Notes under the pieces: generated by a model
The model's input: the letters and a program-made list of their open reading frames with translations, nothing else
Told to the model about the DNA's origin: nothing
Databases searched by the model: none
Assembly: GCA_976226885.1 (NCBI GenBank)
Contig: OZ320313.1
Coordinates: 113,336,001 to 113,400,000, forward strand
Length of the DNA stretch: 64,000 nt
DNA from: Iphione sp. A-MEVVRFRX5
Lineage: Eukaryota
Reading direction: 5' to 3'
Part shown: piece by piece, positions 9,000 to 58,011 of the stretch
Layout: each line of letters starts with the position of its first letter
How positions within the stretch are numbered: the stretch's first letter is position 1
Position numbers and translations under genes: made by a program

Positions 9000-9800
9000 T
9001 TGCTATAACCGAGGCGTCTAGTAATATTCACTTTTGGCCAAGCTATCGGTGTCGGCAGAATTCACTCAGGGTGGATTGAGCTGTGCCGTCTAAAAGCCCG
9101 GCGTGCTGGCACACATCTCTTTTCTTGGCTCATCTGCCTCCTTTATGGTCCCGCAGGACCTCGCCCAGAGGTTATCTGATCCGCGGCTGATCCTTGAGCC
9201 CAGCGCTTCATTAGAGGTCGCATCCCTGTCCTCTACTCCAATCACCCGGCCACGCTCCTCACCGGTCGTAACCCGTCCCGCCTTCCTCCTTCAGCTTAGG
9301 CTGATGCTCTGTTTGGTGGCCTGTTTTTCTCTCGCGCGGTTGCTCCCGCTATGGCTCTTGCTCCATGGTTCACATGATCGAACGTTCAGAGGTGTTGGGC
9401 TGGCGGTGTTGGCGGCGGCGGCGGCGGCATTGGTCGTCTTATGCAGGCTCTCCCCCGGCACTGCTAACAGTTGACCTCAACAACAACAACAGCCACCACT
9501 ACCACCACCACCAACTGCCACAGCGACTCGTAGCACCACCACCACCACTACGGTGGTACAAATGCAGCCTGCCAAATCCAGCAGCGAGATACCTGGCTGA
9601 GGTTTGGAGTCAGTCGACCATGCGTGCGCTCGCTCGGCGCACACAGCCCTCCCCCGTGTCGCCCCGGATCTAACAGCGGGACGGATAGCCGCTAGTCACC
9701 GCCTACTGTATGACCCTCCGGCTTTATGACCACAGAGACAGCCTGGTGGTCGTCGTGCTGCAGGTTGGTCGACTTCCAGCACGCTGTGGGAGGATTTTAC
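9000..9800 (+). promoter_or_regulatory. CpG/GC-rich promoter-like island with a possible short first exon (9710-9763)
   Basis: GC- and CpG-rich stretch with GGC and CAA/CCA triplet runs. ATG 9710 after an in-frame TAG gives MTLRLYDHRDSLVVVVLQ|gttggt (phase 0, weak donor). Confidence 0.3.
9478..9551. repeat. Compound CAA/CCA triplet microsatellite
   Basis: caacaacaacaac...caccaccacca...caccaccaccaccac. Confidence 0.8.
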
Positions 9801-19535: not shown

Positions 19536-19687
19536 ATAAATCCCAACAGTAAAGCTTACAACGAGGGAATCAAAGTCGGGGATTACGTAGACAACATTAA
19601 TGGCGACTCAACGCAAAATATTATGCACAATGAAGCCCTGCAACTCATAAGAAACGCTTCTGACAAGCTTGAACTGGAACTCAGACG
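19536..19687 (+). CDS. Exon encoding the C-terminal two-thirds of a PDZ domain (PDLIM/SYNPO2-type)
   Basis: tttttccccttgcag|ATA...CG|gtgagt; 152 nt, phase 0 to 2. INPNSKAYNEGIKVGDYVDNINGDSTQNIMHNEALQLIRNASDKLELELRR has the PDZ hallmarks (SKA, G-D, ING, H-EA helix) and aligns gaplessly with ZASP/PDLIM and SYNPO2 PDZ as I recall them. Confidence 0.93.
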
Positions 19688-25600: not shown

Positions 25601-28600
25601 TAATGATTTTGAAAGACAAATAGTCCACTGGAAGACGAAACGAATCGAGCCTGGGAAGTAGGTTTGACGTGCATAATTCAATTGGCACAGACTCAGCGTT
25701 CTGCTGAGTTACGTTGTAGTCCCATTTGATCTATCTACTATAAGAGGCGGCATAACTTAATTTTGGCAGTCGTACCCGTCTGTATGGGAGAGAATGGATT
25801 GGGGATGAAGTGCTGAGGCACAGGTAGCAGTAGCCAAGACTTCGGAGGCATTTACATATTGAAAGCAATCAGGTTTGAAACACACTGTAAATACTTGTGA
25901 TTTGGTTTTGCATATATGGTTAAGCTACATAGATGTCCTAAAGGCCCTTGGCGTTTTATTTTGCGTTTTAAGGAAGACGGCGTGCACTTTGCCAGACTCT
26001 TGTAGCTTGTATTTTACCATTTCGTTTCGAAACGTCTTCTGTAACATAAACGACAGTATCTTAACTTGGTAAGCTAAAAAAACAACAAAAACATATTTTT
26101 TTAAAAATAGTCTCCAGTAGTGAAACGATGCAGTCAGTCAACACGTGGTGGATTCACTGAGGACAAGGATAAAACTATATTTATGTTCCTGTTTCAACCT
26201 GCCGAGAACGACTTTGATTGAAATATTGCATCATCTCATCTATTTTAATCAGTGTTTGGTGTTAACGATGTGTTCGGTTTTATTGTCGCACGAGTCTATT
26301 GATAGAGAATAGCATCTAACGGAATGTAACTGGAACGTCACATTAATGGAGTGCACCTATTCCCATCTAATGTCCTTCCATCTGTTTTTATTAACGCTAA
26401 TGCTAAGGTACCTCTTAAACGGACCGGCCTGCCTTCTGTTTTTCCAGGGGATCTTTAAGTAACACATTGCCAAGGGCCAAGGGCCGGCTCAACGGGGACG
26501 TTAACCACAACCTTCCCGGGTACTGGAGCGGTGACGAAGGCGAATTCAACGGTAAGCATATTCATTCAGGAAGCCGAGCTATTTATCAGACACCTTAGCA
26601 GTTAATTACAGACCTTCATGCGTCACACGGCTTGTTTGATGAGGTTAGCATTATTGTTGTGTAGAGGCTGGAAAGAGAAAGCTGAAAATCAATCAGTGTG
26701 TGATTTCATATTTATGAGAGTTCCCTTCGTTAGTTGGTGGCGGATGTCCCCGCCAGCGGAAAGATTTCATCAATGCCAGCGACAAACACGAAGGTCTATT
26801 CTTTACAGTGAAGCGCCACCTTCGCTTCTATTTGCATAATAATTTGAGAAAAAAAGTACGGTTTTGGACACTGTTCACTAAGGTTCAGTCAATGTCGTAC
26901 AAAACCAAAGCTTTTCCACTACTAAAGTTTCGTTCACATACTAAAGCATCGACAATATTGACTTCTTTCCTAAATGTGATTTTTTTGCACCGCTTTTTCA
27001 TACAAGCGCAAACTGTTCTTCGTCTTTTTACCTGATAGTTGTACTAATAAATTAATTCTACTCACGCTTTATAAACAGAATCAAAGGGTGCATTAGAACT
27101 ATTTTCATTTGGAAGAGTAATGCTACTGGGACACATCTACTTAGCAACAAATGTTAGGCAAAATCCATTCGAAATCAGTGAACGTAAAATTCAACAGTTT
27201 CCTCGTTCATTAACGGACTTTGCGTAAATAAACAAGTAACTACACTTCAGTTAAGATGTTTATCTAACCGTCATTCATTCATGTTGAGGAAATGTTTACC
27301 ATCCTTTTCCCCCCCATCTGAGTATTTTGTATTGTCGATCTCCTTTCCCATCACTCTGCCAGTTGTCAATGATTGGTTCTCTCCCGTATGGACTCGCCAC
27401 GTTCGGACGCCATTTTTTGTTAACGGTGACGAGGGATTGAGAGCTGCCAATCATTGCTGGCGTGTACCATGGTTGTCAACCCGCACCTGCATAACGCTCC
27501 TTTGCCATTGTGTTTTTTTTGCTGTTTTTCACTTTCACGCAGGTCTGTGCAAACCCGTCTTTTCTACGATAGCCTTGGACATTGGCACCTTGAATCACGC
27601 GGCTGACGATATGTCAGGATCGTCGTCAGATTCGCAGAGCAGTATCATTCTGGCCAATGGGGCGGCCACACGTCCACACGGGGCCCAGCCCGTTCCCAAC
27701 GGGGCGGGTCCAAGAGCCTCGCCCCTCAATCCGTCCAGCTCTGTCTGGTCTCCCTTCGGTCAGTGCCGTGACGTGGTGTGCTGTGTCTACTACTACTACT
27801 ACTACCACCACTTCTACCACCATTACTACTTACTACTACTTCTACTACTCACAAACACACCACCACCCCCTTCCCCCCTCCCCGGTTATACCAACTACAC
27901 CCGGTAGCTCCGAGAAATTCCCCTATTGCTGGGCACATCTGTGATTCGGTTACGTTGCCTATCATTTTTGATTTTGGTTAAATCTACGTTCATACTCGCT
28001 CTCTCATATAATCACACGATATGGACATATTTCTGATTCTAATTTGACAATATTAGGTATAAGGATCTAATAACCCTTTTTTTTACAATGTCACCAGTCT
28101 GAGAATATTTCTCTCTAAAATTAATGGGACTTCGACGTAAATTAAGTTTGGTTCGATATAACTATCCAGTGTATTCATGACGTGTGACCATATCGAAATA
28201 ACTTTTCCTCATCAGTCTTCCCGGTTTTCTCTTGCTAACGCAATTAGTGCTTCTATTCAATCTCACATTCACACTGATCTCTTTAACTTCGACGTAGGAG
28301 AGTAGTAGATGGTCGCTGGGCTTTCGACTCTAGTTAAGGAATCTTGGTGCATCATCAGCACAGAACAATGCCGCACTGCATACCGACACTACCTTGTCAA
28401 ATTCATCTTGCGCACTCCTTTCAAGGACCTGACTGAGGGAAGTCGCTTGGCATGATTAGACGATATCGTTGTATGAGGAGAATATATTTAGAGTGGCTGT
28501 TTGACAACGTGCAGTAGCTGGTCGTATGAAACGAGTGGTAGAGCACTGAAATGCTAAACCATCGAGGTGAAAGAAAATCGTCATACCAGCTGTGCCTCGA

Positions 28601-31600: not shown

Positions 31601-34600
31601 TCCTTTGCGGTGCAATAAATGCTCAGGTGTTTTACTGTAATGTAGCTTTAACCTTAGCAAAGCAATATAAGCAACCGGCCTTAGTACTGTATAATATAAG
31701 AAGTTTCGGTCTGTCGTTTTTTTCTTCTTTAGTTTATCTGTTTAGTGTAAACATGAGCTGGCACTGCGTCCGGAGGTCTGTATATGTTAGCATTAGCCAT
31801 GCTGCCTTCAGGAAGAGCAGAACGTTTTAAAAAGAGCTGCTCATTAGGGCGCTAATGATGGCGGTCCTCTCCCGACCTTCTCCAGGCGGGGCTTCCATTC
31901 ACAGCCGCCGTTTCTGACGAGCAGACAAAAGCCTCTCTTCTCATGCTGCCCCCAAGCACCTTTCCTCTCACACCATATCCATTGCTAGCGATAAGAACAC
32001 CCATTATGCGCACCGTGTTTTTTTTAGTATCATAAGAAATCATATCGCCGATGGCGGTACAACAACAGCGGAGTTTAATCGCTTGCCTGCATGCTTTTTC
32101 TTATGTATTCCTCGAATTTAGGAGAGAACCGGACGGTCAGCTACAAGCCAGTGTCTTTCGGAGGACCCCGTCCTAGTTCGTATTCGTCGCCATCCACCCC
32201 TACTCCACTTCAACAACACCAACATCAGCTTGAACAGCAGCACCTGCACCAGCAACCTCTACAGCAGTATATGGAACCACAAAGCGGTGAGTAGATTGAA
32301 ACTAGACCTGACAGCCTGGTTTTCTCTCAAAACAAGGCGTTTCGCTTTCAGGTTTTTTGAAATGTAATACAGTGTATATATTTTTTTCAGCACCTAGCGC
32401 GAAGAAGCATTATTAACCAAATTGATTTGTAATCGGACCATGTTCGATGAAAGTGGTATTTTAGCAGTCTCCTACAGAGTTGAGGGACTTCTTATGATCT
32501 TATTGTTGAATCTTGTGTTGTGACAACTAGATTTTTTAAAATCCGGAATGTAAGACAAGTGCTGAGCAAGACAAGACAAGCATTGTTAGTTTTTGCCATT
32601 TAGGAAACGTTCGGTAGCATTAAATAGGCGTCGTTCAACGCTATAATATGTCAGGAGTCATTGTACACGTATGCATACAGTGTGCGTCGGCACAAATAGG
32701 ATTATTTCTCGCGTGTATCTTAAACGAACGTGAAAGGACGCTTACCAAGCTGTCAGGCCTTTTCATGCTGTTCTCACATGATCGCACTGGGAATTGAGTT
32801 ATTGTGGTCCTCAGTCCTATCCATAGTTTGCCCGTCTCTTAATAGCACGAAGCTGGGCCGCGTACTCATAATAATGATTGATGCAATAGTCATTCTAACT
32901 GAGATTTACGGTCGGTTGATCCTCGTGCTGTTGGTGGCAGCCAACCGACCAGGACCGTCGGTTCTTCCGGTAGAACGCAGGTCGTAGAACTGCTGGGCGT
33001 AGCTCTACGTCTCATAGGAAAGGTAACCCGAGTAAGAGTAGTCCTAAAGTTATTACTTTGCAGTATTTACCATCGTTTTCCTTATAAAGTTGACCCGCAG
33101 GATGGCAGTGGAATGCTTTGGAGGCTTTGCAAGCCTTTTTCGAAATGTGTACATCAAACCTTTGTAAAGGATCATACGATTCTTTCTCGTTCTTATAAGC
33201 GAATTGATGAAAAAAAACCATGACCCTAAAATATGTATGTATTCCTTGTACCCAGACTCACTTGAAGCCATTCCTTGTGGTATAATTTTACACCTGAACC
33301 TCGCTTTATATTGTGGACTGTTCCGAGAACAGCATCATATCCTCCTTTTGGCGAAGTTGTCGAAGTTCACATATAATTACCTCTAATGATCTTTAAGGGT
33401 CTTCCTCTCCGCAATTTAGAACCATTCCAAAAACGGGGACGGCAGTGCACTCAGGTGAGGCAGCGCAGAACGAAAGCGACGGCCTGTGTGTAGTGGGCCC
33501 TCACTTGAAAGGCAAAAACTAATTGGGCCTTGTTGGAAATTAGATAAAACAAATGGATCTGTCATCGACGCAGACACCGCTACAATGATTCAATCACAGC
33601 CTCGATTGCTGCCACTGTCTGATAGCATTTTTCCACCTGCAGCCCCTCGTGCAGAGGCATGGCCGCCATTGTCTTGATGCCGATGTGCAGTGGATTGGAA
33701 CTTGCCTCGCAATTACAATTTCTCGGCACATCAAAAGAGGCCCGCTTCAAAGTCTGTATTAGCGAAACTAATGCGCCGTATGAATATAAAGTAATTCCTA
33801 TCGATGGTGCTCCGCCAGTCCCAAGCCCGCAATGTCAAACGATCACTTTACCTGGAAATTATTTATATGAGGCTAAATTTGCTGTAATGTTGGCAGATTT
33901 GTGTCGCTTGTTGATAGTATGAGACATTTGATTTCGTAAAGGGTTCTCATTGAAGACATACTATGGAGCGGTGGCGTGTGTACACCTGCAGTAAAGGAGC
34001 ACTATACGGAAGGAGCTGAGGCTATAGTCTCAAGTGGGCGCCCACTCTCGAGAGGCTTGGGCGACGGGGGTGGAGGGTTGGGGGTGGGGGGTATCCCTCA
34101 ACAGGCCCGTCACATCGGATGTAATCTCCCTGATTGGCTGACGATGATGGATCTCTCTGCCCCCATTCCTTTACATTCGGCCTCATTCCCGCTCGCGCCC
34201 CGAATCATCCCCACCTCTCCGCGCCAACCTCTAATAACGCCCGAAACATGTTCCCTACAATCCTGTTGCGGTCTTGAATGGCCATCCGGACCTCAGCTTC
34301 AAACACAGACATACACAAGCAACCACTTAACATTCATAGTCGTTTTCACCTGCTTTTGACAGCTGCCAGCATGTGGAATTCAAACAGATTTCGTATTGTC
34401 ATCCGAAAAGAATGCTCTGATGAAGACCTGCATTCTGTACTTTCCCCTCCACCATTCAGCTGTATAGGACTGGTTTTTATGCTGTTCTATCCAATTCGTT
34501 CCCCGAACTAGTCAGGCGCAATGAAGCAAACTAATTTCGCGGGTTGTCCGCCCTTGAAGTAGCGTCGCTTAGGCAGTTATTCAAATAGAATGGATTAAAG

Positions 34601-40600: not shown

Positions 40601-43600
40601 CTCGTTAAGAGAAACAGTGGATGTCGAATCATTAACACAGTTTTCGACGAATGAAAGGAAATTCGGAAAGTTCAGTGAAAAAAAATCTTTGTCTATTTAT
40701 TTCAGCACATGTTAGCCATTTGGACTTTCTCCCACCAGCGACCTGAAATGATGATCATAGTAATTAAGTTTGGTGAAGGGTCAGCGCCTCTTTGTTTTCC
40801 TCAACACTAATCTTATAGGAAGAGACTACCAAATCTGCATGACTCCATCCTCTAATTAAGACTTCCTCTCCTCATGCATTTTTACAAAGCACCCAAGTCA
40901 CGCCGTAAGGAGGAATTCATATTATTCCCTACTTTTTAATAAACTAGTTGGCCTTTGATTTATGCACATACCTCATGTCAAGTTCAACAGGCAGCAGTAT
41001 TGTTCATACACACTCATATGTTGACATATGTTCCAGACGTTATCGCAATATATATTACCTTATATGTAAGTTTGAAACGGTAAGGATTCCGATTCGTGGC
41101 CATAAGTGTAAATTAGCTGCCTGTTTTCACTTTGGAAACAAACTAGATTTTAGTCAATTCACTTGAATCTTCAAGAACCAGGCCTGGGTTTACTATCGTG
41201 GTACGGTTTGCTTATCTAATCATCACTTTGTTTTGTTTTCAGTTCATAGCAACCTCCTTTGATTTGGATGACAACAAACCTACCTTTCTCCTTACTGACA
41301 TAAGCATGCCCCTTGCACCGGTCTTCCTGTCTGTCCTTCCTCGTCGCTGTTTAGACGTTCATCCTTCTCAAATCTAAATGTTTCCAGGTGTCTGGACGCC
41401 CGGTGCAAAACCTGATCTTGGAAAACACAGGGAAGTGCAAGAGGAGGAGGATCAGTTGGAGGAGACGAAGCCTGGCGCGAACGAGGCCAACAATGCCAGG
41501 CCACTGGTGTGGTCGCCGTCTGGTCAGCAGAGCCCATCTAAGAAGGAGTACCGGCCCGTGCGGATAGAGAGCGCCACTTTACCCAAGACGTCAGCGGACG
41601 CTGGCAAGGTCAGTTCATGTCTGCCCTCAGTAATTTCAGGTCGTGGGTCTAGTGCCCTACCTTCTAAGTGGCGGTAGATCTGTCAAAAGATTGATAACTT
41701 CAGAGATGGGATTGTAGATTGTCTTTTTTATGATAGTCGTGAGACATAGTGGTCGAGTGATGATAGCACTGTCACAGTGATAGTCGTCCTTATATATACG
41801 ACCAGAAAAAGCATTCATTTCTCTTTGGTCCCTCGCCTGATAGAGGGTGGGGGTCCCTAGGAATGCTGCTGTCCAAGCATCTGACCAGCCGTCAGTACAT
41901 GTATCTTGTTTTGTTCAGTTCAAAACCTTTATGTCCTGTGCATTGCCTTTTTGGTGTTTTATCACAGTACATATATGTATACAATGTACTTGTATTTGTT
42001 GTCCCCCGCCTCATAGAGGGGGGGACATTAGGAATGCTGTCAGCTGGTGTCCCGACCATCCGTCACACTGTTGTGGGTTTTATAAGTCTTAAACCCTTCA
42101 CTCAAAAAAACTGATTTTAATATATGATATTGGTATATATGGCCCCATGGCACTGGGTAATTTTGGTAGTAATTCAAATATTTTGAAGGTGAAATTATGC
42201 CAATTTTACTCTTTTCCTAACACACCTACAAACATACATACCTGGTTCAGGGGTTCCTAGGTCTGACAATGCACATACATACACACTCAATGCTCAGTCA
42301 TGCAGAACCGAGGGTTTGTAGCAGTCTGGTGCTCAGTGAGGCAGAACCGAGGGGGCTGTGCCCGGTCAGGCAGAACCGAGAGTTGTAAACCTGAAGGACT
42401 TAAATAAGTCTAGCCAACTACCCCCAAAACAAGCTGCCAATCAAAGTGGTTGTAAGGAGAGAGAGACCCTACACACACACACACACACACACACTCATTT
42501 CTCTCTCTTTCTCTCCCCCCCCCCCCCCCATCTTTATGGGCAGTTGATGGCGGGGGACAATAGACCTCACAGGTCCACAATCTTGTTACTGTCTGAATCT
42601 AAATTTAGTCCCTTTTCATATAATTCAAATCTGAAAAAGAAGAGGAAAAAGAGAATAAGTATGTAGGTGTTGCCATATGTACACATTGGGAGATCAATTT
42701 GCAGTTGCAATCTAGCATGAAACCTTGTGATCTACGGAACACACAACTAGCAAGGGAGGTGTGCCGTGAAACTGAATGGTTCTTGTTTAATAATACGTAA
42801 CCGCAAACTTAATATATGTTCATGTGTAGATAGTATCAAGAAAGCCTGAGAAAGAGGGAGAGATACCTCTCTGACTGAATGACTATCGTTCCAATGGATT
42901 ACACTTAAGAATGAGGATTTGGGAGATACTTCTACCTGGTTGAAGCCAAGAAAACCCTGGATATGAGTAGCTTTCGTGAAAATAGGAAAATCAGCCCCCC
43001 CCCCCCCCCCAAGGCACATGATACTTGTACCTGTATGTTGTGGAATGACTGCTATTAACGTCAAAACGAAAGATCCGTCCCTGCGTTATAACACCTAGTA
43101 CGCCTATATCCTTCCAGGGTGCCGACCTTCTTAAACCAGAGGATAGTTTCGCATGGAAGCCGAGCGGCCGCACCACAACGGCGACTAGCACGGGGACGAC
43201 AGTTACCATGACGACGACGACGCCGTCGCTAGCGCCGGCTGCCACGTCGCCCACCTGGAACGGAACCATCAGCCATTTCTCCGAGACGCGCAGCGGACTA
43301 CCCACACCGCAGAGCCCCACCATCACCCTCTTACAAAAGAGCAGAGGTAAGGCACATGTCATCGCTCGAGGTAGAGTGCACAGCTAGGAACAAGTACCCA
43401 CAGTGTCAAAATCACCATGCACACAACCCAGCACACTTGGCTCAAACAAGCAAACAAGATGTGGATTTTGATGATTATTACAATGTGCGTATATATATTA
43501 AGTTGTTTAGTTGATTTATGTCTTGTTATTCATTTGTTTCAATTGTGTTTCAAATAAACAAAATATAAATAATCTCATCACACAAAGACATGGTGACATT

Positions 43601-46600
43601 TTTCTAATACCTCTAATAACAGAGTTTTAACATCTTCGTTTGATGAGTAAATAATACGATTTTAAAAATATTTGATTTGAACAGCAAATCCTTACTCCAG
43701 ATAGTAATATTTTCCTACTTATTATTTGGTACCCTTTGGGTTTTCACAGAGTTACTACATGTATTTAGTGTAATATTAATGTCTTGTTTATGTGAACTAA
43801 GCTATGTAGATCTGCACACTGGAGAACATGATAAAAAAAAGTAGATGAACAATACACAGATCTAATTTCAGTTATTAATATTGAATTCTCTTGTAATTGA
43901 AAGCATCTGTTAATCACAATGATATTTTCTGTAGATGATTACATGTATACATGGATATACATGTATTCTCTATCATAGGAACTTCTGTTAGCGTCTCCTC
44001 TACCTGGGGTTCTTTTTATTCGTTGGTGTTTTAGTCAGATATAGATAAGTCTGTAGTATGTTGCTTTCGAGCCTAAGAATTTCACAGTTGCACCTCCAGC
44101 ATAACCTCTTATAAGCACAACGCAGAATTCCCTCTGTGTGTCTGCACTTTTCATTCTGGTGAACAGTATGCTTTAAATTAGTGATGACGGGTTGTCCTTT
44201 GGTTGACTTTCCTTTTTTTCCCAAAGCTTTATTTTGGGGTTTTTATTCGTCTCTTATAATTTCCTTTTTATTGAGTATAGCAAGACTCGAGCTTGCCCAC
44301 CAAGTTGTCAAAGTATACTATCGGTGTTTGCAGCGAAAAATTCGTACATCGCTCCTAGTGAATCAAGTTACACATTTAGCGAGTCGAGCGTGCCGCCCAG
44401 CGAGTCCAGTTTTGCCATGAGTGAGTGTAGTGAGATTAGTGAGACATGTAGCGAGCTTAGTGAGACCCGCTCGACAACGGACATTTCTGACATGAGTGGT
44501 CTCTACTGTGTGCTGCCCTATGGCACCAAGGACAAGTTAGCTGAGCTGCCCATCCAGCTGGCCAGTCAGCCGACCAGCCGACCTGCCGTAATAGTGGAGG
44601 AGGAGGTCCCTTCGTCTACCAGGAGCGCGCCCTGCTCCCCCCAGGTGGAGACGCGCAGCGAGCTGCTCAACCTCCGCAGCCCCGAGCCCAAGAGTGCCAC
44701 CAGCTCGCCCAGGATTAAGGTGAAGAAAGCGCCACCCCCGAAGGTAGCCGCCAAACCACAAAAGATCGTGGTGCCTCGTGTCCCATGGCGGCGACCCAAC
44801 GCCACGTTATGGGAGTCGGAGCATAACGGTCTTCCCGTGTGGATTGCCGAGCCCTGGATAGGGCAGAAGCCTACCTCGCCGACACCACGGACCATCGTGG
44901 CGGAGTCCAAGAAGACTCCCGAACCGCCCATGTCACCCATACCGGCCGAGGGGATAGCCGTCGGCGAGATTCATGTGACATCGACGAAGAGTGCGCCGTC
45001 CTCGCCGCAGGTGACGGTGAGGAGTCAAGCTCGATTGGACTCTCTGAAGCCCAAGAGTGAACCGTCGTCGCCGGCGACCACGAGGACCATCCGCACCACG
45101 ACTCCCGTACGTGGCGTCAAAGCGCGTCGACAGCAGATCGTACCCATGCCTGACCCCACCCCGGTACCCGTCGTCATCCCTTGCACACCGCCCGGCTCGC
45201 CGGCCACCAGCGCCCGCAGCTTTAGCCAGGCCAGCGATAGCCACAGCTTCATGGACTCGCCTCCCGAGTCGCCCGAGCCCGGCGATTTCAGATCGGACTG
45301 GCGGTTCCCACAGCAGCTACCAACCTTGCGGCGGAGCACGTCCAAACCCGAGCCGGTGCATGTGCCCTTGGAGAAGCTGAAGGACGTGCCGCTGGCCACG
45401 CCGGCGGGAGCGCGACGACCCGCCACCCCGCCACCGGAAAGGCTGCTCAGTAAGACGCCGCCCATCCGCCTGCAGCGCAGCAAGAGCACGCCGGACCACC
45501 GTAGGCATTCCGTGCTTTCCTTGTGTGGCCTCATCCTTACATTACAACAGCATGGTGTTCGATATAATCATCAACACACTGGGAGATTCAAATCAATATG
45601 CTTTTTTTCGGTGATGTTTTTTTTTTTGTACACAATGACAACAAAAAGCAAACATTCGATCCACCACATCAACCAGTTTAAAATCCTTTGTTCAGCGTGC
45701 AACCCACTGCGCGATAAAACAATTGATTTCCATTTCCCTTCGAGTGTTGACCTGGAACCTAGGTTCTATGTTGCCCTGCTCCATGGTAACACTGTATAAC
45801 ACTTGTTATATATTTTTTGAGGTGGTATAATTACCAATGCACAGAGCACGTATATCGTTTCACTCCCTGTTATCCCCGTTCAACGTTCATCCCAGCTTTT
45901 AATCGTTGGTTCCTGCGGGAGCCGTATTCCAGCGAAAGACACTGAGACTCATTTGTACGTGCGCTCCAGTTGACAGTCTTATGTATCCCTCGCGCCCGCC
46001 ATTCCCAGCCTCCAGTCCAACGTCCAACCCGCTTGTGTTGTGCACCATCCATGTCAACCACGTCTAACTGTGGCGCTGGCAATATCAGCAAACGCGGAAG
46101 TATTTCTCGTTCGTGAATGCTCGTTCGTTAACAATAGTTTCTCGGATGGCTTATTGTTTAATTAGCTTTGAACACGAAAGTTATTCTGATAGGACCATTT
46201 ATTAACCAACGTAGGGAAATCACAACAGTTAAAAAAATAGACAGGTATTTCTTAAAGCATTAATTATGTGAAAAAGTCTCCCTTTTCAAGAATGCCTTCC
46301 AGTTACTTAATGCCTTTTCACCTGTCAGCAAGGTTGGAATGTTTTATTTTCCTGTCATAATATGTGTCGTTGTAAAAGGACAAGGAAAACAACTTGTTAG
46401 AATTCTTCTGCTTTGCGAATAAATCCCCCCCCCCCCATCTTGGAAATATTTTACTATAATTTAGATTTTTCTCAGCGTAAAAACACGTCAGCATAACAGC
46501 AGGAAAACAGAGAAGTTGCTCTTCATCCTTCCAAGCAATTTTAATTTGTCTTTAGTTTAGAAGCACAGTTTCTCTGGTATTACAAGCAAACACTTTAGTT

Positions 46601-49600
46601 ACACTCTCTGGTGTATTCAGCTTACGTCCGCAGTTCATGACAGTGTGGGTGTAGCCAGTCATTCTCGTGGTCGTTAGATGAGTTTTCCTAGTAATAAGCT
46701 GCTCTTCATTTATGTATCAACTCACAGCTCATACTCTCAGTCTATCACATGCAGATAATAATCATACAGTAATGCACAGTATTTTAGATTTCATGGCACA
46801 GTATGTTCTTGATTTCTATTGATTTTCGAAAATAGTCCGTAGGGGATTTAATTTGATTTTAGTTAAGGCACCGTTGTCTCTTATCGTCAGAGGTTGTGGC
46901 ACCTAGGAAGTTATTACGACGTAAACTACATGGTTAGCCTTAAATGGCATCTGTCTCGCATGAACTAGTCCTCCGTGAACTTTCTTGAAGACAGTGTTTC
47001 TGTTCTGTTCTCTTCTTTTATCATTCATTATAGAGTTACCCGACTGTAAAGTCTACAGAATGAAATAGTTACAGAAGACATTTTCAGAAAATTAAACATA
47101 TACATGTACAGATTCACAAATATGTTCGGGGGGGGGGGGGGGGGCTCCTTGTCAGTGCTATGAAAAGGGAAGCCCGGAAATGATGCTGAAATTTTGGTGT
47201 TTTGTGTGCAGACAGATCATTTGACTTTTGGTTGGTTCATACCGGTCCAACAACATTTTTAGACTTTGAATGAAATGTTCCCTCCTCCGTTTGATATTGG
47301 TTTCTCCTTGTACACTTTAAACAGTTCATACTGTATTCGGTGCGTGCTGTACCGTATACACGTATACGCATACGTATGCCTACCGCCCGGTCTATCGAAG
47401 GAAAGATCAGCGTCTGTAATGTTGTAGAGCTTGGTGGGCACAGCGATAAGGGGGTATATGTACTTTCAGACGACGAGCCCACCAAAGACGTGCTGCCACC
47501 TGGTATGAGTTCTGTTATGGTCACTGGTAAGAGCCTCCGCCTGCCACTCCACACCCTCCTCCTCCGTGCGTCTTGCCTTCTCCTAACCGCTACCTAACAA
47601 CTACTGTAATCTATTAGCACTGCTTTAAGGAGTGTAATATTGGTGGCTTTCCGTTCAAAAGCCTTCGTTGTTATTCCCACCACTACCACAATGTCACTAG
47701 CACAACTATCTCTACTACCACTTGCTCTGTATACGTCACCACCACCAACACCACCACCACCATCGCTGACACGTCTACAGGGCACAGCCACCACCACCGC
47801 CACTACAGGTTACAGCCATTATTTTGGGAAATTTCCATCAAACAGCGATCATGTTAGTAATAACAGCTCTTCATGAAAAAAAAACCTGCAAGAGTTTCAT
47901 ATAGAGATACTCCGCCGAAATGTATCTTCACTTAGTTTTTATGTTTTGTTCCCCGAGTTTGGTTTCTTTTGTACTAATATAATTTCGAGTGATAAGTTAG
48001 CAAGACGCGAATCGAATATTTCTTGTCCCAGTCGTTTTTCTTTTGCACTGTATACGAAGTTATTTGGTATGTAAAGGCTGAACTGAAAAAAGTTTACTTT
48101 CAGTTTGTGTGTGTGTGAACTAGAATAGATTTTGCATTATTAGTGTAACTGTTCCATAAAGTTGCTTCTTTCAGCTTCTCTAGTGGACAAGCTGAGATAT
48201 CCTCACAGAATTAATGTTACCTTTTTAGGCATCGGTCAAGCATTCCTTTGTGATTACGTCATTGAAATATTTTGCACTTTTTGCTTTATCCCTTGGCTCT
48301 ATATTTTGTGTACCAATTAACCATTTACCACCAAATTACGAGGACTTCGGTAGCTGAACTAAGTTTAAATGGTGTTGGAAGGTTCCTGCTTTCAGACCCT
48401 TGCCATAAAATTTAGTACATACTCTATTTGATTTATTTATACTTACCAATCTGTCAATCATGCCGTTGAATAATATATGTAGAGATTAAAGATTTTAACT
48501 AGTCCTTTAATTTTTTGTGGTCATATGTGACCTTACTAATGAATATGAAAGTAAATATTTTGACAGGACGCCCCGTATGACCATGCTTTAATCTCTATGT
48601 GACCATCCTTTACGTGTGCGCGGTCTGGGCAACAGTTACACTTCATTCATTTTTCCTATTATGTCTTCCGTTTGGGTCATTTATTGTCAGCTTATCCTCT
48701 ACATTTGGCCTTTAAAACGCTGTGGGGACATTTAAATGTTTGTGTTGCATGTTTCTATTATTCCGTCATGCACAGTTGGGATTTTTAGCCTCTTCTCTCC
48801 CCCCGGTAATATTTTTGTTTTGTGATATTTTTTTTTATTTGCCGCCCAGTCTTAATCACGGACCTATAACAATCTTGAAGCCGAGTGGACAGGTAACGTA
48901 AGGATGGGTAGCAGTATACAGGATGGTCACGTCGAGCGGCCAGCTTGTTTAGGAGGGTAATGTTTTGTGTCAAGTATCATGTCGAGCACGCGTCCACACA
49001 TGTATGTCCCGCTATATATTCGAAGTTAGACATTGGTATGGTTTTAAGACTTGCCAGACTATAACTACACACCCACCTTTTGGAACTACACTGTACATAT
49101 ATGTATATATAATCCTCTTGCGACTTAAATATATAATCTTCTTACAAGTTTAAATAGATACCCCCAGAATCAGTCCCGATTACACTTGGTCTGGCTGTCT
49201 TTCAAGTACCATATGATAAGATGCTGAGTCCCAGGCAGTTCGGTGACGCTTCTATGAAGGTGACCTCACTGCCCTGTCTAAATCTGAACCCGGTAAGTTG
49301 GTACCATCGACTCTAGCTCGTACACTTGCTTGCAGAGGGCCAGCTGCCCAAGGGGGCAGTCTACATAGGCAGCAAGGAGACAGTGGACGGCGACGTGCAG
49401 CATACTGATTCGTACTACGTCCTGCCCGGGGAGACCACGACCAGCACGACGCGCGTGGAGAAGAAGGCCCCACGTTATGCCGGCGTCGGTCCCAAGGACA
49501 AGGACACAGGCATGCCTGTCAGCCTGAGAACGGTCAGTCCAAGATTACCACCCCCATCCCCCTCAACACACTCAATGTTGATTTTCCTTACAATAGTGTC

Positions 49601-52600: not shown

Positions 52601-55600
52601 ACGGAAGGACTTATCACGATGGGAAGACGGAGACACCCATCACATCCCGCTCCCAGGTTTACTTATGTACCGTGTACCTAGATCTGTAGTAATCATTTGG
52701 TAACAATCTGCACATGGCCTGTAAGTGAGGTTACTGGTGCACCAGAGCTTATATAAAGTCCTACTAAGTTTTGTTTCCTTTTCCCTATGCAGGAAATTTA
52801 TTGATCGTTATTTTCAGCTAAACTTTATAATTCCAAAGATTTTATTCGGTTACTGATCCATTCAGGCATTTCGTAGTAACATGAGTTTATGAGGCCATTA
52901 AGCTGCAGGAAGCCCCTTCCAATGAAAACAAAATCGTCCGTATGTTAACAGTTTAAAAAATGTCAATAATGTTGGCGTTGCACTCACGCTGGGCCGAACT
53001 TCTGTTTGTACTGGGAGATTAAGTCCCACTGAATGGTCTGGTCAGTCATTAGTTCCAGCCCCCATGGTCTGAGGGTGCATGGCCTCCCCGCCCTAATCCC
53101 CTCTCTGTGCAGTACATTATTCCATTAATGGATCGCCGCGATCAGACATTCCACCTGCTGTTTGGTAGGGCTCCGTAGTTCTATTATGTTTCTGTCCCGT
53201 ATTGCTGGTATGTAGTAGCAGAGACGGAACCATGACCCGTAATGACCTTTTTAAAGCTGACAGAGGACCTTGTCACAAAAAGAATCTTATGATTAAGATA
53301 TTATTAAAATTGTATAAATCTAAAAGAATACAACAAAGACTGTCACCAAGCACTATGGAAATGATCGGTTCGTAGAGACGAGTTGTCAATAAACATTTGC
53401 TCTTGTATGTAGGCCAACAACTTGATATAATGGTCAGATTATCTTTCGAACCTGCTTGCCCTTTAAGCTGAAATGGTAGTTTACCATATATTGGTATTCG
53501 TATGTTTCTTTGCTATTTTACAGACTATTGATGAGAGCAACCAGAAGGAATGGTATAAGCAAATGTACAAGACACTTCACACAGAACACAAACCTAAGGA
53601 GAAGGGTAAGGATCTGACTACTTTTGTAAAGTCATTTTGGATTGCAAATCCCAGATTCTAACAGAAATGTGTAATATTAACCTCAGTTTCATCCATGCTG
53701 TATTTCGCTACTAACCGCTATCAGTAATTCACTTAAATGCAAAATGTATCATAGTGTTAACCGTACCTTAGAATTAGTATGAAAAGTTTATCTAGTCATA
53801 ACAAGTTGATATTAACTTGCTTACAGATGAGGAGGAGGGAGATGATAACTCCAATGATGCCTCAGCCGCACACACACTAACCACAGGTGTTTTCACTCGC
53901 CATTAAAAATGTTGTTCTATTTTAAATCCATTCTGTTTTGTCAACAACTGAATGTCAAAAGCCATGTGATACCCTTCACGGAATCTATTCCTTTTTTTCA
54001 TATTCAGAAAAAGAAACGTTAATCCGATAGTATCGGTGCCTCTGTGTCTGTGTGTCATACGAAACTGACTTTCAGTCAAAATATCATTTGCATATATACA
54101 TGTACACAGATGAAAAAATCGTTTTAGTTATTACGCGGTCATTACCCACTTGCAAGTCATGTAGTAGGAATAATTTAAAGCAGAATCTAATCGCAGCATG
54201 ATAATTACTTTGCCCTAGCAGAAGCAAAAGCAAAGGGGTGCATGGTTTTAAAAACTCAGTCGTTAGACCCCTCCAGCGGTGTGCTATATATAACACTTCA
54301 TCACTTTATCTGTGGACTTTCGCATGTTCGAACTGCCCTCAGCGCTCTTACTAGTACACCATACGGTGCAGATCTATTGGCAGCTTTTTCCCTATCAATC
54401 ACCACTCCTCCAGATCACCTCGCGAGTTAATAAACTTACCTTCACATCTATCTTCGTTTTATGTTGCCTCCAGGCTCCAAAAACCTCGCACATTCACACA
54501 CACACACACAGACACGCACACACACACACACAGCCTCTTCTCCTCAGGTGGCGCTGAATCTTGTCCTTATAGTCCCACAAAGCAATTCTCTTGCAATATC
54601 AAGGGTAGAAGGACATCGATAATTGCCTTAACTATCGTCCCTTTTGTCGCTGTCTCCGTCTCCTCACACACCATATTTTGGTGGATCATTTGACCTGGAG
54701 TGTTACTTTTTCTAAAAACCTTCCCCTCTTTTGTTTCTGGATGTCGAAACGTGGGATTTAGTCAATGGTGAAAGTTTGTTTGAAGGATCATTATCTTTTA
54801 TGTTAGTATGTTCTTGATTCCATTAAGATCTCTCTTCATGTCCAGATACTTGCCAATTCTCCTAATCGTTTCTTCAAATGACTTTCTTAAGGAGTGCTTG
54901 TGAGAAGCGTCTAGAAAGCTGTATGCTACTTCGCATGCGATTTAGGAAATTCAAAAATTTATGCCTCAGAAAATGCTTCATGTAGTCGAAATTAGGCTTT
55001 CACTTTTCACACGAGTGCTTGTAGAAATGCTTTGCATACTCATTCAGACAATTTTGTAAAGTTTGGATACAGACGAAATATTAATTTTAAGATAGAAAAG
55101 AAGAATGTCCCTCTATCGATTTATAATCAACGTCTGACTAACGAATTCGGGATTGCTTTTTATTCAGATTAGGTCATTCTTAACATCATTATGAGGAGTC
55201 TGATATGTTTAGCATAAGTAGGACCACAGTTGACATAATGTAATGGGATTTTATTCCGACAATGTTAATGCCTTAGCTGAGACGAACACCTACAAGCCAA
55301 CCTATGTCTTCCCAGAAGATGACACATCATCAGAGAAAGAAGGTAAATTGACTTAAGTCAAAGATAAACAAGCAAGGGAGGATTAGTGACCAGGCCACAT
55401 ACACCAAGCAATTTCCCGGCATTCATACAGCATTAGCAGATGAATGCACATAATAATACTCTGGCATACGACAATTTTTTTCTATCAATATTCTGCTTTT
55501 GACGCTTTTTCTTGGAAAGAAACAAAGGGCCCGGACATTAATTCAGATAAACGTAACAACTATCTGTAATCTTTTCATCATTGAAACAATCTTGTTTTTA

Positions 55601-58011
55601 CTGCGTTTGGTAATTTTATTGATTTTTGCTGCTCCGTATTGTCTGTCACAGTCATAATCCGCACAATTCTCACCGATTGTGACATTGCAATTCGCTGCTT
55701 TGGTGCACCGTTCAGTGGTCTTATTTACACATACCGTAGAACCTCAGAATGGGGACACCAGTGACTCGACATCCCTCAACTGGGCACACTTTTGGTTGAA
55801 TAGCTCCTTATTTGGGATATACATGTATATGGTAATATCCAGAACTGGGAACACACCCTGAATGGGGACATTTTCATTGAGAGTGTCCCCAGTTCTGAGG
55901 TTCAGTTGTATATACCAATATACATATATATATGTGTGTGTGCATACACAAATATGTATACACCCATTCACATACATAGGTGAGACGTGGCTATGTCTTT
56001 CTCCCATGAAGTGAAAAAAAAACCATTCACATACATGTATATATTTATTCATGTACACGTATGCACATGTGCCCGTCATGGTTATTGCCCAAGTTACTAA
56101 AGGCTTGTTCCCTCGTTTCGCCTCTCTGCAGAGCCTAACCCATACCGGCCCAGCTACGAGTTCCCCAATAAACGCAAAGGCTCAGGTAAGTCGCCATGAC
56201 AACTCCTCCTGTGTGCCGTAGATAATGTTTCAAACTTACACTAGGTGGAAGCACCGTCAATAGCCTTTCACACTTTTACTTCCAATTTCAGCTGAGCCTT
56301 TAAACTTGTAGAGGTGCATGTATCCTGCTGGAGCTGAAAGGATTAACGTCCTGTCGGAAGCCATTTTTCTTTATATTCTCACTGCATTATCACAAAAAAT
56401 AGTACCCATAGTTAAAGATTGATGTAACACGAAGCAAGAGTCGATGCGATCATCGACTTTATTGTCAACTACTTGAATGCCCTAGTAAAAAGACGTGCAC
56501 ACGGAAACTTGTGTGGACTGTGTCCTGTCGTGCATGGTCACCTTTCTGTGGGATAAAGCATTGCCAAGTAGTGGCCTATGGTCTCCTTCCTCTTTTTGAT
56601 TGACACGCCGCCGGAGTGGCAGCCTGTGTGTGATACCCATGCTTGTTGGCCGCTTCCCAGGCCAGGTATGCCCCGCTGTAGGAAAGGGCTTTATGTGTCG
56701 GCCAGCCTGCCATCTGGCAGGCGGTGTCGGAGTACGCGTGCCTGACATCCAAAGGGGCAAATCAAGTAAGAGGGGGCGAGGGAGGGGAGGAGGGGGAGGT
56801 GGTGTGTGTGTGTGTGGGGGTCTGGGGGCGGACCTGTTACATAGAGCACAAGCACACAAAGGACCACTCCTTCAGGCTTTTATTCACAGAATTCTGCTCA
56901 GTATAGCACAGACACGTGTTCGTAGGGCGGACAAGTAGCGCCACACAGAAGCACTCACGTTTGGTTTTATTAGGTTTCTTTAATAGCTGTCACGTTATCT
57001 TCATCTCCAGCTCGTGACCGTGAAGTATGTAACCTCATAAAAGAAAAAGTGTGAAATCTAAACATACTGAAGAGTGAGGTATTATTATTATTGATTAAAA
57101 GTAGATTTAAAAACACATGTAACGATCACTTAATTTCCTTTGCTTTTGGTAAATTAGCTTAAATTGACATGCCGTGTTGTATGATTATTTTGACAGTTGC
57201 AAAGCATCATTAGAGACTTCCTCAGGTGTATACAGTAACTCTTGAAAGGCGCATCCTGGTAAAAGCGCCCCGCCCACCCCTAACCGCGCCTAAGTTTTCA
57301 GTGCTGGAGTCACATGTGCATATTGTACGAGTAGAGCGACATCTGATGCTGCGGGCGGATGAGGTAAGGTATGGAATTGACCTGCAGCTTGCTCGTCTTA
57401 CAAGTCGACCCCCCCCCCCCCCGTTCCCACTCCTCTAACTCAGTCTGGCAGGAAATATGATCAGCACCCACCAATCGTGGCTGTGGTTGGCAGTCGGGGA
57501 GGGGAGTTAGAGGCGGGGGGTGGTAAGGGTGGGATGAGGGTGAACCAAATGGGGTCCTTGTCATACGAGGTGGGCTCAGCATGCCCGAAGGCACTGGGCT
57601 TTCAACTGGAGCCCACCCCAGTAGACCACACACGAAGAATAGCTTCTTTAGCTCATTATGAATTTACCTGCTACAATATTCATGAGCTGCCGCTTCTTAT
57701 TGGTCGAAAGGAACAGGCCTGGCGTACTTTGTCCCTGTAGCTCGTGGAAGTGGAGGTATAATGGTGTTTTGATTCAATTTTTTTAAGAAACGGAAACCTT
57801 TGCCCTTAGGAAACAAAATCCAAGTCCGTGTTACAGAGAACACGACAAAGGAAATTGATTATACGTTTGAAGCGACTGTGAGCCCATAGTTTATTGTTAA
57901 TTGTGTAACGTCATCCTACGAGCAAATGGTATTAAACTATTTTTATTTTCTTCCAGACGATACGACTAAGTCGTTGGATCGCTATACGGTGACTGGCATG
58001 GGACGTAAAGG
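19536..58011 (+). CDS. SORBS: Multi-exon gene, partial at both ends: PDZ + disordered region + SoHo domain, SORBS/CAP/ArgBP2/vinexin family adaptor
   Basis: Exons 19536-19687, 26448-26551, 27543-27758, 32122-32286, 35243-35368, 38159-38515, 39327-39443, 39885-40448, 41388-41608, 43118-43346, 49336-49532, 53524-53605, 53827-53886, 55277-55342, 56132-56185 and 57957-58011 all have AG/GT borders and join in frame without stops (2765 nt). A SoHo signature is formed across 49336-49532 + 53524-53605. The symbol is family-level only. Confidence 0.8.
24848..24898 (+). mobile_element. Possible degenerate tRNA-derived SINE head
   Basis: A-box-like TAGCGCAGTAG (24848) and B-box-like GCTTTGATCCC (24888) at tRNA-like spacing. 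Mismatched boxes; no cloverleaf or tail recognised. Confidence 0.25.
26448..26551 (+). CDS. Internal exon following the PDZ
   Basis: ttctgtttttccag|G...G|gtaagc; 104 nt, phase 2 to 1; (R)GSLSNTLPRAKGRLNGDVNHNLPGYWSGDEGEFN(G). Confidence 0.8.
27543..27758 (+). CDS. Internal symmetric exon (phase 1-1), S/G/P-rich, ends in VWSPF
   Basis: tttcactttcacgcag|...|gtcagt; 216 nt; GLCKPVFSTIALDIG...ASPLNPSSSVWSPF; lies within track ORF 27281-27907. Confidence 0.8.
27787..27850. repeat. Compound TAC/CAC triplet microsatellite
   Basis: ctactactactactactaccaccacttctaccaccattactacttactactacttctactactc; intronic, just after the exon donor. Confidence 0.85.
32122..32286 (+). CDS. Internal symmetric exon (1-1), YKPVSF motif and Q/H-rich tract
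   Basis: ttcctcgaatttag|...|gtgagt; 165 nt; GENRTVSYKPVSFGGPRPSSYSSPSTPTPLQQHQHQLEQQHLHQQPLQQYMEPQS. Confidence 0.85.
34070..34145 (+). promoter_or_regulatory. Possible internal promoter elements (G-rich GC/GT boxes, then ATTGG next to TGACG)
   Basis: ggggtggagggttgggggtgggggg followed by tgattggctgacg (reverse CCAAT adjacent to a CRE half-site). Motif-level evidence only. Confidence 0.2.
35243..35368 (+). CDS. Internal symmetric exon (1-1) with PPxY motif
   Basis: ctcttcttggcatctgttatag|...|gtaaac; 126 nt GC-rich island; (A)LELRPPSYSQVMAGSKRVAPRGGASEGWQPPPTARQATRFN. Absent from the ORF track in this frame because it has no start codon. Confidence 0.8.
36844..37068. other. Assembly gap (225 N)
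   Basis: Run of N. It lies in the intron between exons 35243-35368 and 38159-38515 and could hide a small exon. Confidence 1.
38159..38515 (+). CDS. Internal symmetric exon (1-1) with synaptopodin/myozenin-like SKGLALFLKRQRK motif
   Basis: tatactctttcag|...|gtactg; 357 nt; very high GC3 coding-like composition; inside track ORF 37999-38814. The donor is weaker than consensus. Confidence 0.85.
39327..39443 (+). CDS. Internal symmetric exon (1-1), S/P/T-rich
   Basis: ttttgtccaactatag|...|gtgagt; 117 nt; VNSEQADLSQPQSATNPSTSTTLSPRPSPPAAHRASPKP. The nearby downstream AG (39333) gives a stop, so it was rejected. Confidence 0.75.
39885..40448 (+). CDS. Internal symmetric exon (1-1), disordered
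   Basis: tattttgtgttcaccag|...|gtgagt; 564 nt; EGDSPVHHLTDD...VIAAAPRP; track ORF 39836-40456. Confidence 0.85.
41388..41608 (+). CDS. Internal exon (1 to 0) with VWTPG, VWSPSG and YRPV motifs
   Basis: ctaaatgtttccag|...AAG|gtcagt; 221 nt; GVWTPGAKPDLGKHREVQEEEDQLEETKPGANEANNARPLVWSPSGQQSPSKKEYRPVRIESATLPKTSADAGK. Confidence 0.88.
41828..42065 (+). mobile_element. Two imperfect direct copies (about 65 bp, 173 bp apart) resembling HINE/Helentron-type ends
   Basis: 41828-41894 and 42001-42065 share gtccc..gcct.atagaggg..taggaatgctg...gacca.ccgtca. The second copy forms a hairpin gtccccc(g)cctc-ata-gagg-gggggac after a T-rich run. The family assignment is inference. Confidence 0.4.
42471..42494. 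repeat. (AC)12 microsatellite
   Basis: Direct read. Confidence 0.95.
43118..43346 (+). CDS. Internal exon (0 to 1), T-rich, ends in PQSPTITLLQKSR
   Basis: cctatatccttccag|GGT...AGAG|gtaagg; 229 nt; GADLLKPEDSFAWKPSGRTTTATSTG...LPTPQSPTITLLQKSR. Missed by the ORF track on + because it has no start. Confidence 0.9.
44334..45500 (+). CDS. Large symmetric (1-1) exon, 389 codons, S/P/T/R-rich; probably a cassette
   Basis: tcggtgtttgcag|CG...CACC|gtaggc; 1167 nt (multiple of 3); core of track ORF 44234-45799. Composition turns AT-rich shortly after the donor. Confidence 0.8.
47470..47502 (+). CDS. Candidate 33-nt symmetric microexon
   Basis: tatgtactttcag|ACGACGAGCCCACCAAAGACGTGCTGCCACCTG|gtatga; (D/H)DEPTKDVLPP; preserves frame. 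Supported only by splice signals. Confidence 0.5.
47736..47805. repeat. Imperfect CCA triplet repeat
   Basis: caccaccaccaacaccaccaccaccatc...ccaccaccaccgccac. Confidence 0.7.
49336..49532 (+). CDS. SORBS: Exon (1 to 0) encoding the N-terminal half of the SoHo domain
   Basis: acacttgcttgcag|...ACG|gtcagt; 197 nt; EGQLPKGAVYIG...VEKKAPRYAGVGPKDKDTGMPVSLRT matches ArgBP2 [22 protein letters not shown] (recalled). Confidence 0.95.
50748..50767. repeat. (AT)n microsatellite
   Basis: Direct read. Confidence 0.9.
52538..52656 (+). CDS. Candidate alternative exon (1 to 0), or 3' part of an alternative first exon (ATG 52465), splicing into mid-SoHo
   Basis: ccgctgccttattttag|AG...CAG|gtttac; 119 nt; (E)EAEGKNNRRQRRHRRPLHTNDGRTYHDGKTETPITSRSQ. 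Same phases as 49336-49532 and a similar C-terminal end. The donor is weak. Confidence 0.4.
53524..53605 (+). CDS. SORBS: Exon (0 to 1) encoding the C-terminal half of the SoHo domain
   Basis: tttgctattttacag|ACT...AAGG|gtaagg; 82 nt; TIDESNQKEWYKQMYKTLHTEHKPKEK matches the SoHo core TVDRPKDWYKTMFKQIH. Confidence 0.95.
53827..53886 (+). CDS. Acidic symmetric microexon (1-1)
   Basis: aacttgcttacag|...|gtgttt; 60 nt; DEEEGDDNSNDASAAHTLTT. An acidic stretch follows SoHo in vertebrate SORBS proteins (recalled). Confidence 0.7.
54495..54532. repeat. Imperfect (CA)n microsatellite
   Basis: cacacacacacacacagacacgcacacacacacacaca. Confidence 0.9.
55277..55342 (+). CDS. Symmetric microexon (1-1) with YKPTYVFP motif
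   Basis: gttaatgccttag|...|gtaaat; 66 nt; AETNTYKPTYVFPEDDTSSEKE. Confidence 0.8.
55734..55908. mobile_element. 175-bp MITE, Tc1/mariner-pogo-like
   Basis: Terminal inverted repeats: ccgtagaacctcagaatggggacac versus the reverse complement of the right end, caactgaacctcagaactggggacac. Flanked by TA on both sides (55732-55733, 55909-55910). No ORF. Confidence 0.8.
56132..56185 (+). CDS. Symmetric microexon (1-1) with YRPSYEFP motif
   Basis: tttcgcctctctgcag|...|gtaagt (near-perfect sites); 54 nt; EPNPYRPSYEFPNKRKGS. Confidence 0.8.
57957..58011 (+). CDS. Microexon (1 to 2)
   Basis: tttttattttcttccag|...GG|gtaagt; 55 nt; DDTTKSLDRYTVTGMGRK(G). Confidence 0.7.

Follow-up and report, generated by a model that had tools for sequence, protein, structure and literature searches.

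A SORBS/CAP locus of Iphione sp. that probably encodes an N-terminal PDZ domain and a long disordered region ahead of its SoHo and SH3 domains

Z-discs, stress fibres and adhesion sites bring together three distinct kinds of scaffold: the SORBS, PDLIM/ZASP and synaptopodin-2 proteins. The SORBS family is defined by a sorbin homology (SoHo) domain plus three SH3 domains (PMC2453138), and is not known to include a PDZ domain. A preliminary description of one stretch of Iphione sp. DNA had proposed that a single reading frame joins a synaptopodin-2-like half, opening with a PDZ domain, to a SORBS half, and we asked whether the locus holds such a gene and where its N-terminal half may come from. 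A natural protein of this kind would reveal which scaffold functions can work in cis, and its gene would offer a genomic reference point for how the vertebrate SORBS-PDLIM and SYNPO-MYOZ neighbourhoods arose. We analysed the window (the whole stretch of 64,000 nt; 44.7% G+C, with a single run of N at 36844-37068) together with 60 kb upstream and 100 kb downstream of it; all positions are given in window coordinates, and genome-wide searches covered the 1.18-Gb assembly in its 89 contigs. The locus is best read, with good though not complete confidence, as one gene of ~132 kb encoding a PDZ domain, a disordered region, SoHo and three SH3 domains. The proposed gene would run from -23.7 kb to +108.1 kb, and the frame described earlier is its 5' half. 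Full-text searches of the literature gave no description of the PDZ-SoHo-SH3 combination, which may nevertheless already be annotated somewhere.

The C-terminal half belongs to the SORBS family, an assignment settled by three SH3 domains lying downstream on the same strand, in exons at ~99.7, 103.7 and 108.0 kb. These matched Pfam SH3_1, SH3_2 and SH3_9 (E from 3e-5 down to 4.5e-14), and a stop codon follows the third at 108102-108104. The SoHo domain had been called unambiguous; this holds for the family, through the SH3 domains, and not for the profile score. Exon 15 reached 21.3 bits against Pfam Sorb (profile positions 22-40 of 42), below the cut-off of 27. The shortfall is due to an intron that interrupts the domain; the scan used the exon 15 peptide alone, the first part of the domain being on exon 14. 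The counterpart of exon 15 in a related species scored 20.7 bits against the same cut-off. A whole-genome search with the Sorb profile was uninformative, being blank even at this locus, and a search of the whole assembly with exon peptides was used instead; in it the exon 14 peptide was single-copy. This locus is thus the only SORBS/CAP orthologue detected in the genome. Downstream of the SoHo exons lies a giant open exon (76129-82059, 5.9 kb, phase 1-to-1), optional, with no Pfam domain and with 34-50% identity to single-exon open reading frames in about ten other genomes. The gene thus resembles SORBS1/2/3 (CAP/ponsin, ArgBP2, vinexin) and Drosophila CAP in having SoHo followed by three C-terminal SH3 domains, extended disordered regions and an optional exon of giant size, here in a single orthologue. 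It departs from them at the 5' end, where the predicted frame opens with a PDZ domain followed by ~1,100 additional disordered residues that bear conserved motifs.

These additional exons were delimited by comparison with related species. All plus-strand open segments were searched by tblastn against the genomic loci of relatives, namely ENA ERZ25767047 (two haplotigs) and Logan ERR14368248 and ERR14368249, and exon boundaries were fixed where acceptor and donor phases matched in the window and in the relative, phase being the number of bases of a split codon carried into and out of an exon. The resulting exons, with the one assembly gap among them, are as follows.

Exon 1, -23737..-23645, plus strand: first half of the PDZ domain, with the ATG; upstream of the window; phase 0 out
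Exon 2, 19536..19687, plus strand: second half of the PDZ domain; phase 0 to 2; pyrimidine-rich AG acceptor, GTGAGT donor
Exon 3, 26448..26551, plus strand: phase 2 to 1; 74% identity in the relative; both splice sites strong in both species
Exon 4, 27543..27758, plus strand: SSDSQSSIILANG and VWSPFG; phase 1 to 1; 61% identity in the relative
Exon 5, 32122..32286, plus strand: Q-rich, starting GENRTVSYKP; phase 1 to 1
Exon 6, 35243..35368, plus strand: conserved PPSYSQVM; phase 1 to 1; E 7e-12 to the relative
Assembly gap, 36844..37068, no strand: within the intron between exons 6 and 7
Exon 7, 38159..38515, plus strand: the SKGLALFLKRQRK exon; phase 1 to 1; 63-70% identity in two relatives
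Exon 8, 39327..39443, plus strand: short and conserved; phase 1 to 1
Exon 9, 39885..40448, plus strand: disordered; phase 1 to 1; 31-32% identity in the relative; strong donors
Exon 10, 41388..41608, plus strand: VWTPG, VWSPSG and KKEYRPVRIESATLP; phase 1 to 0
Exon 11, 43118..43346, plus strand: AWKPSG; phase 0 to 1; 61-80% identity in two relatives
Exon 12, 44334..45500, plus strand: 1,167 nt, disordered; phase 1 to 1; two homologues
Exon 13, 47470..47526, plus strand: 57 nt; phase 1 to 1; conserved in a Logan contig
Exon 14, 49336..49532, plus strand: first part of the SoHo region, KAPRYAGVGPKDKDTGMPVSLRT; phase 1 to 0; 75% identity in the relative
Exon 15, 53524..53605, plus strand: second part of the SoHo domain, KEWYKQMYKTLH; phase 0 to 1
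Exon 16, 57957..58011, plus strand: 55 nt, after the SoHo domain; phase 1 to 2; strong acceptor, GTAAGT donor

The PDZ, PPSY, SKGLALFLKRQRK, VWxP and SoHo exons of the preliminary description all lie where it had placed them and have readable splice sites. From the VWxP exons onward these sites are conserved in the relative, except for exon 16, which was read from the window sequence alone and ends exactly where the frame described earlier ends. Exons 3, 5, 8, 9, 11, 12 and 13 are additions to that set. Exons 3 to 15, thirteen in all, gave collinear, same-strand tblastn matches in the relatives. Each of exons 3 to 15 has both an acceptor and a donor, and twelve of them are conserved in ERZ25767047, collinear on one strand; the other, exon 13, was matched only in a short Logan contig of the second relative. 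Several boundaries could be read closely. The acceptor of exon 4, cag/GTCTGTGCA, is conserved in the relative; the donor of exon 8 has a score of 8.1 in the window, and the same score in each of the two relatives compared; and exon 11 holds a highly conserved block, TSPTWNGTIS..SGLPTPQSPTITLLQKSR. A possible artefact, in which the PPSY codons of exon 6 would belong to the polypyrimidine tract of an acceptor further on, at 35271, was discarded, since in the relative, as in the window, a strong acceptor precedes the conserved PPSYSQVM. The assembly gap needs no coding content, because the outgoing phase of exon 6 and the incoming phase of exon 7 agree (both 1); its flanks carry no coding signal or conservation, and no exon abuts it.

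Together, exons 1 to 15 amount to 3,847 nt, which read as 1,282 codons uninterrupted by a stop, and the phases agree at 14 of 14 junctions, three of them not of phase 1. The claim of a stop-free, phase-compatible chain from PDZ to SoHo is therefore borne out. By itself, the phase 1-to-1 agreement among most of these exons is weak evidence for a single gene, and would be found whichever gene owned them. The same DNA could accordingly be read as two adjacent genes on one strand, a synaptopodin-2-like gene with the PDZ domain and disordered region that ends somewhere between exons 3 and 13, and a separate SORBS gene with an unseen first exon; a first or last exon may be small and weakly conserved, and so escape comparisons of the kind made here. 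Against this, all the conserved exons from 3 to 15 are internal ones, 12 of the 13 having both splice sites in the main relative, and the junctions at which agreement is not trivial, between exons 10 and 11 and between exons 14 and 15 (phase 0), fit too. Moreover, when 19-59 kb of the window were compared with the relative by blastn, similarity was confined to the chain exons, so that neither a conserved terminal or first exon nor any other conserved DNA appeared between exons 3 and 15, in agreement with the earlier claim that no terminal exon separates the halves. In the relative, exons 7 to 15 occupy just 19 kb on one strand. Nor did the 224 kb examined contain a LIM domain or any other ending that a separate PDZ gene might use. 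We regard two genes as decidedly unlikely.

The link between the PDZ pair and the rest of the chain involves the junction of exons 2 and 3. The PDZ exon needs onward splicing, because reading past its donor meets a stop at once, and exon 3, alone among the exons, begins in phase 2, as it does in both species, matching the phase-2 end of exon 2. Synteny walks in the relatives did not bring the two exons together: exon 2 was absent within 11.7 kb upstream of exon 3 in one relative, and exon 3 was absent within 20 kb downstream of exon 2 in another. The PDZ exon and giant exon of ERZ26052378 are on two contigs of similar size, maybe haplotigs, and the comparison is uninformative. No spliced model of the protein was found in protein databases; the relatives returned there for the giant exon and for exons 2, 7 and 12 are single-exon open reading frame calls on genomic DNA. 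With its splice sites and phases conserved and with no other conserved exon in between, the frame from PDZ to SoHo likely belongs to a single gene, as had been proposed; the exons, their phases and their conservation are read directly, and from these we infer that they are spliced together.

The PDZ domain itself is divided between two exons. Exon 2 matches Pfam PDZ (2e-8) over profile positions 32-80 only, the second half of the domain. In exon 1 the ATG stands in a good context, an in-frame stop lies 4 codons before it, and 31 codons lead from it to an AAG/gtaagc donor; the exon joins exon 2 in phase 0 across an intron of 43 kb to give a complete PDZ domain (residues 1-82). Searched against the PDB, the 31 residues of exon 1 matched only PDLIM7, ZASP/LDB3, PDLIM5, PDLIM3, PDLIM4, PDLIM1 and PDLIM2, plus Shroom4 (best E = 2.3e-7), with Met1 aligned to Met1 of ZASP, while exon 2 matches many PDZ classes, PDLIM7, PDLIM1 and PDLIM2 included. 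The exon 1 matches thus place the domain in the PWGFRL class of N-terminal PDZ domains, a feature of the PDLIM/ZASP (ALP/Enigma) proteins. The predicted protein most likely opens with a complete PDZ domain of the PDLIM/ZASP/SYNPO2 class. Its likeness to PDLIM/ZASP proteins, with PDLIM7, ZASP/LDB3 and PDLIM5 as the best PDB matches of exon 1, does not extend to the C-terminal LIM domains, which are absent here: the LIM zinc-finger pattern was found on neither strand from -60 to +164 kb (224 kb).

Elsewhere in the genome, the closest paralogue of exon 1 (63% identity) is on contig C10, 28053514-28053594, minus strand. It is an internal PDZ exon of PWGFTLQGG type with an intron position after ...IAK as in exon 1; the 50 kb downstream of it contain no LIM motif, and it was set aside as uninformative. 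Within intron 1, the stretches 5980-7068 and 9151-9667 are among several that show a codon usage resembling that of the gene's exons; they may represent alternative first exons, or simply noise. A more distant relative, ERZ25069853, has an intronic 455-codon frame resembling a membrane protein 1 kb downstream of its exon 2 homologue, unrelated to anything in the window.

An intron of 43 kb and exons that are cassette-like in phase also suit a different view of the single gene, in which the PDZ exons form an alternative 5' end that is seldom used and the main products are ordinary SoHo and three-SH3 proteins made from internal promoters. In vertebrates, SORBS transcripts arise from several promoters and are heavily subject to alternative splicing, intron 1 here has candidate coding-like stretches at 6.8-7.1 and 9.2-9.7 kb, and internal promoters could indeed make forms without PDZ the main products. 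A promoter search by CpG and GC profile gave peaks that merely track the coding exons. On the other hand, at least five related genomes or runs contain open reading frame fragments corresponding to exon 2, almost all of which end at its donor, and this exon and the islands of the N-terminal half are 57-85% identical in several species, which points to selection on the encoded protein. In addition, no conserved exon initiated by an ATG was seen between exons 2 and 15. A rarely used PDZ end is a possibility that we take seriously and consider somewhat unlikely. Since most exons are of phase 1 to 1, many isoforms with and without parts of the N-terminal half are to be expected. Annotators should also note that SORBS orthologues in this clade may be 5'-truncated, because the first PDZ exon sits 43 kb upstream of the second.

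The N-terminal half had been described as synaptopodin-2-like. In layout it is so: as in SYNPO2 and SYNPO2L, a PDZ domain at the very N-terminus is followed by a long disordered region with a PPxY motif, here the conserved PPSYSQVM. SYNPO2 carries KG..LF.KRQ-type and W-x-P motifs comparable to those of the N-terminal half, which has a ~55-residue island around (K/R)GLALFLKRQ(R/K)K conserved in three species, the exon 7 block reading (K/R)GLALFLKRQ(R/K)KCTDA..DE ... AIKALR, and four copies of W-(S/T/K)-P-(S/G), a motif with no copy in the giant exon. The PDZ domain of SYNPO2 itself spans F6-S88 (PMC10405370), and PPPY and PPSY are preferred ligands of the BAG3 WW domain, the route by which SYNPO2 is recruited (PMC3672301).

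Beyond PDZ class and short motifs, the similarity stops. Pfam, Calsarcin (PF05556) included, gave nothing at E up to 1 on exons 4-7, 9, 10 and 12. A phmmer search of exon 7 against 1.84 billion proteins returned no synaptopodin or myozenin match, only two open reading frame fragments from close relatives and two spurious repeat proteins, and the Atlas had no usable match for exon 7 or exon 12. A PDZ-plus-PPxY layout is necessary but not sufficient for membership of the synaptopodin family, and the likeness to synaptopodin-2 lies in architecture and short motifs and does not amount to demonstrated homology. The C-terminal half also sets the gene apart from SYNPO2 and SYNPO2L, being SORBS.

A better SYNPO2-like candidate is the neighbouring gene, which lies downstream on the opposite strand, convergent with the SORBS gene, and has the following features.

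Neighbour gene, window ~138.4 to 116.0 kb (116036-138423), minus strand: has its own N-terminal PDZ
Neighbour PDZ exon 1, ~138.36 kb, minus strand: 31 codons, from ATG to AAG/gt
Neighbour PDZ exon 2, 126676-126828, minus strand: Pfam PDZ; 152 nt, phases 0 to 2
Neighbour large exons, 119.5-120.5 and 116.0-117.5 kb, minus strand: KWTPSGG and IWNPSGG repeats

The large exons have W-(T/N)-P-S-G-G repeats and two motifs of the KG..LF.KRR...W type, resembling those of synaptopodin-2; Pfam gave nothing on either of them. The gene's nearest Atlas clusters (scores 0.89-0.90) carry Pfam Calsarcin, one being named synaptopodin, and we take the calsarcin/synaptopodin character suggested in this way as lead-level evidence only. 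The neighbour has no SoHo or SH3 domains. Its PDZ exons have the same structure as exons 1 and 2 of the SORBS gene (31 codons, then a 152-nt exon, phases 0 to 2), whereas the PDZ sequences are only 37-50% identical, and besides the PDZ no similarity between the neighbour and the N-terminal half of the SORBS gene was found by blastp.

The neighbour bears directly on the origin of the N-terminal half. The preliminary description had offered two explanations, an ancestral composite whose halves became separate vertebrate families and a fusion specific to the lineage. Vertebrate PDLIM genes adjoin SORBS genes, the PDLIM gene being downstream of SORBS and not at its 5' end. The SORB and PDLIM families map to the same human 4/5/8/10 paralogon (PMC2453138), and this, with the SYNPO2-type motifs of the N-terminal half, would be in keeping with a bilaterian PDZ-SYNPO2-SORBS gene that later split into the vertebrate SYNPO2 and SORBS families. 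Such an ancestor is weakened by the presence, at the same locus, of a separate PDZ gene with better synaptopodin/calsarcin-type motifs, to which the N-terminal half has no significant similarity outside the PDZ exons, and by the lack of similarity between this half and synaptopodin-family proteins. Fly, nematode and vertebrate SORBS proteins are also not known to have a PDZ domain. We therefore hold an ancestral composite to be very improbable. The lineage-specific alternative fits better, because a separate synaptopodin-like PDZ gene adjoins: the N-terminal module was most likely acquired by exon shuffling or fusion within the lineage, possibly from a duplicate of the neighbour gene. A further reading, which we put forward tentatively and think unlikely, is that an ancestral cluster of scaffold genes for muscle and adhesion, with SORBS beside PDZ-led genes of synaptopodin/calsarcin type, survives at this locus, that a 5' module of PDZ plus motifs was copied or shuffled onto SORBS within it, and that the vertebrate SORBS-PDLIM and SYNPO-MYOZ adjacencies are remnants of that cluster. 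Were this so, one polypeptide would unite the functions of vertebrate SORBS, PDLIM and SYNPO2.

As predicted from the DNA, the full-length protein of the single-gene reading would start at Met1 with the PDZ domain and continue through ~1,100 disordered residues, in which PPSY, KGLALFLKRQ, repeated W-x-P-S/G and KKEYRPVRIESATLP form conserved islands, to SoHo, the optional giant exon and the three SH3 domains. The binding functions that we infer from these parts are those of their known counterparts. The SoHo and SH3 end would have the usual SORBS role at adhesion sites, with vinculin-type and other proline-rich partners; the PDZ end may dock to C-terminal tails such as that of alpha-actinin, in the manner of PDLIM/SYNPO2-type proteins; and PPSY could dock WW-domain proteins. 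Upstream of the proposed gene, 8 kb from exon 1, we also observed a retrotransposon-like open frame of 2,382 codons (-40182 to -31868), with a gag-like CCHC motif upstream of the frame.
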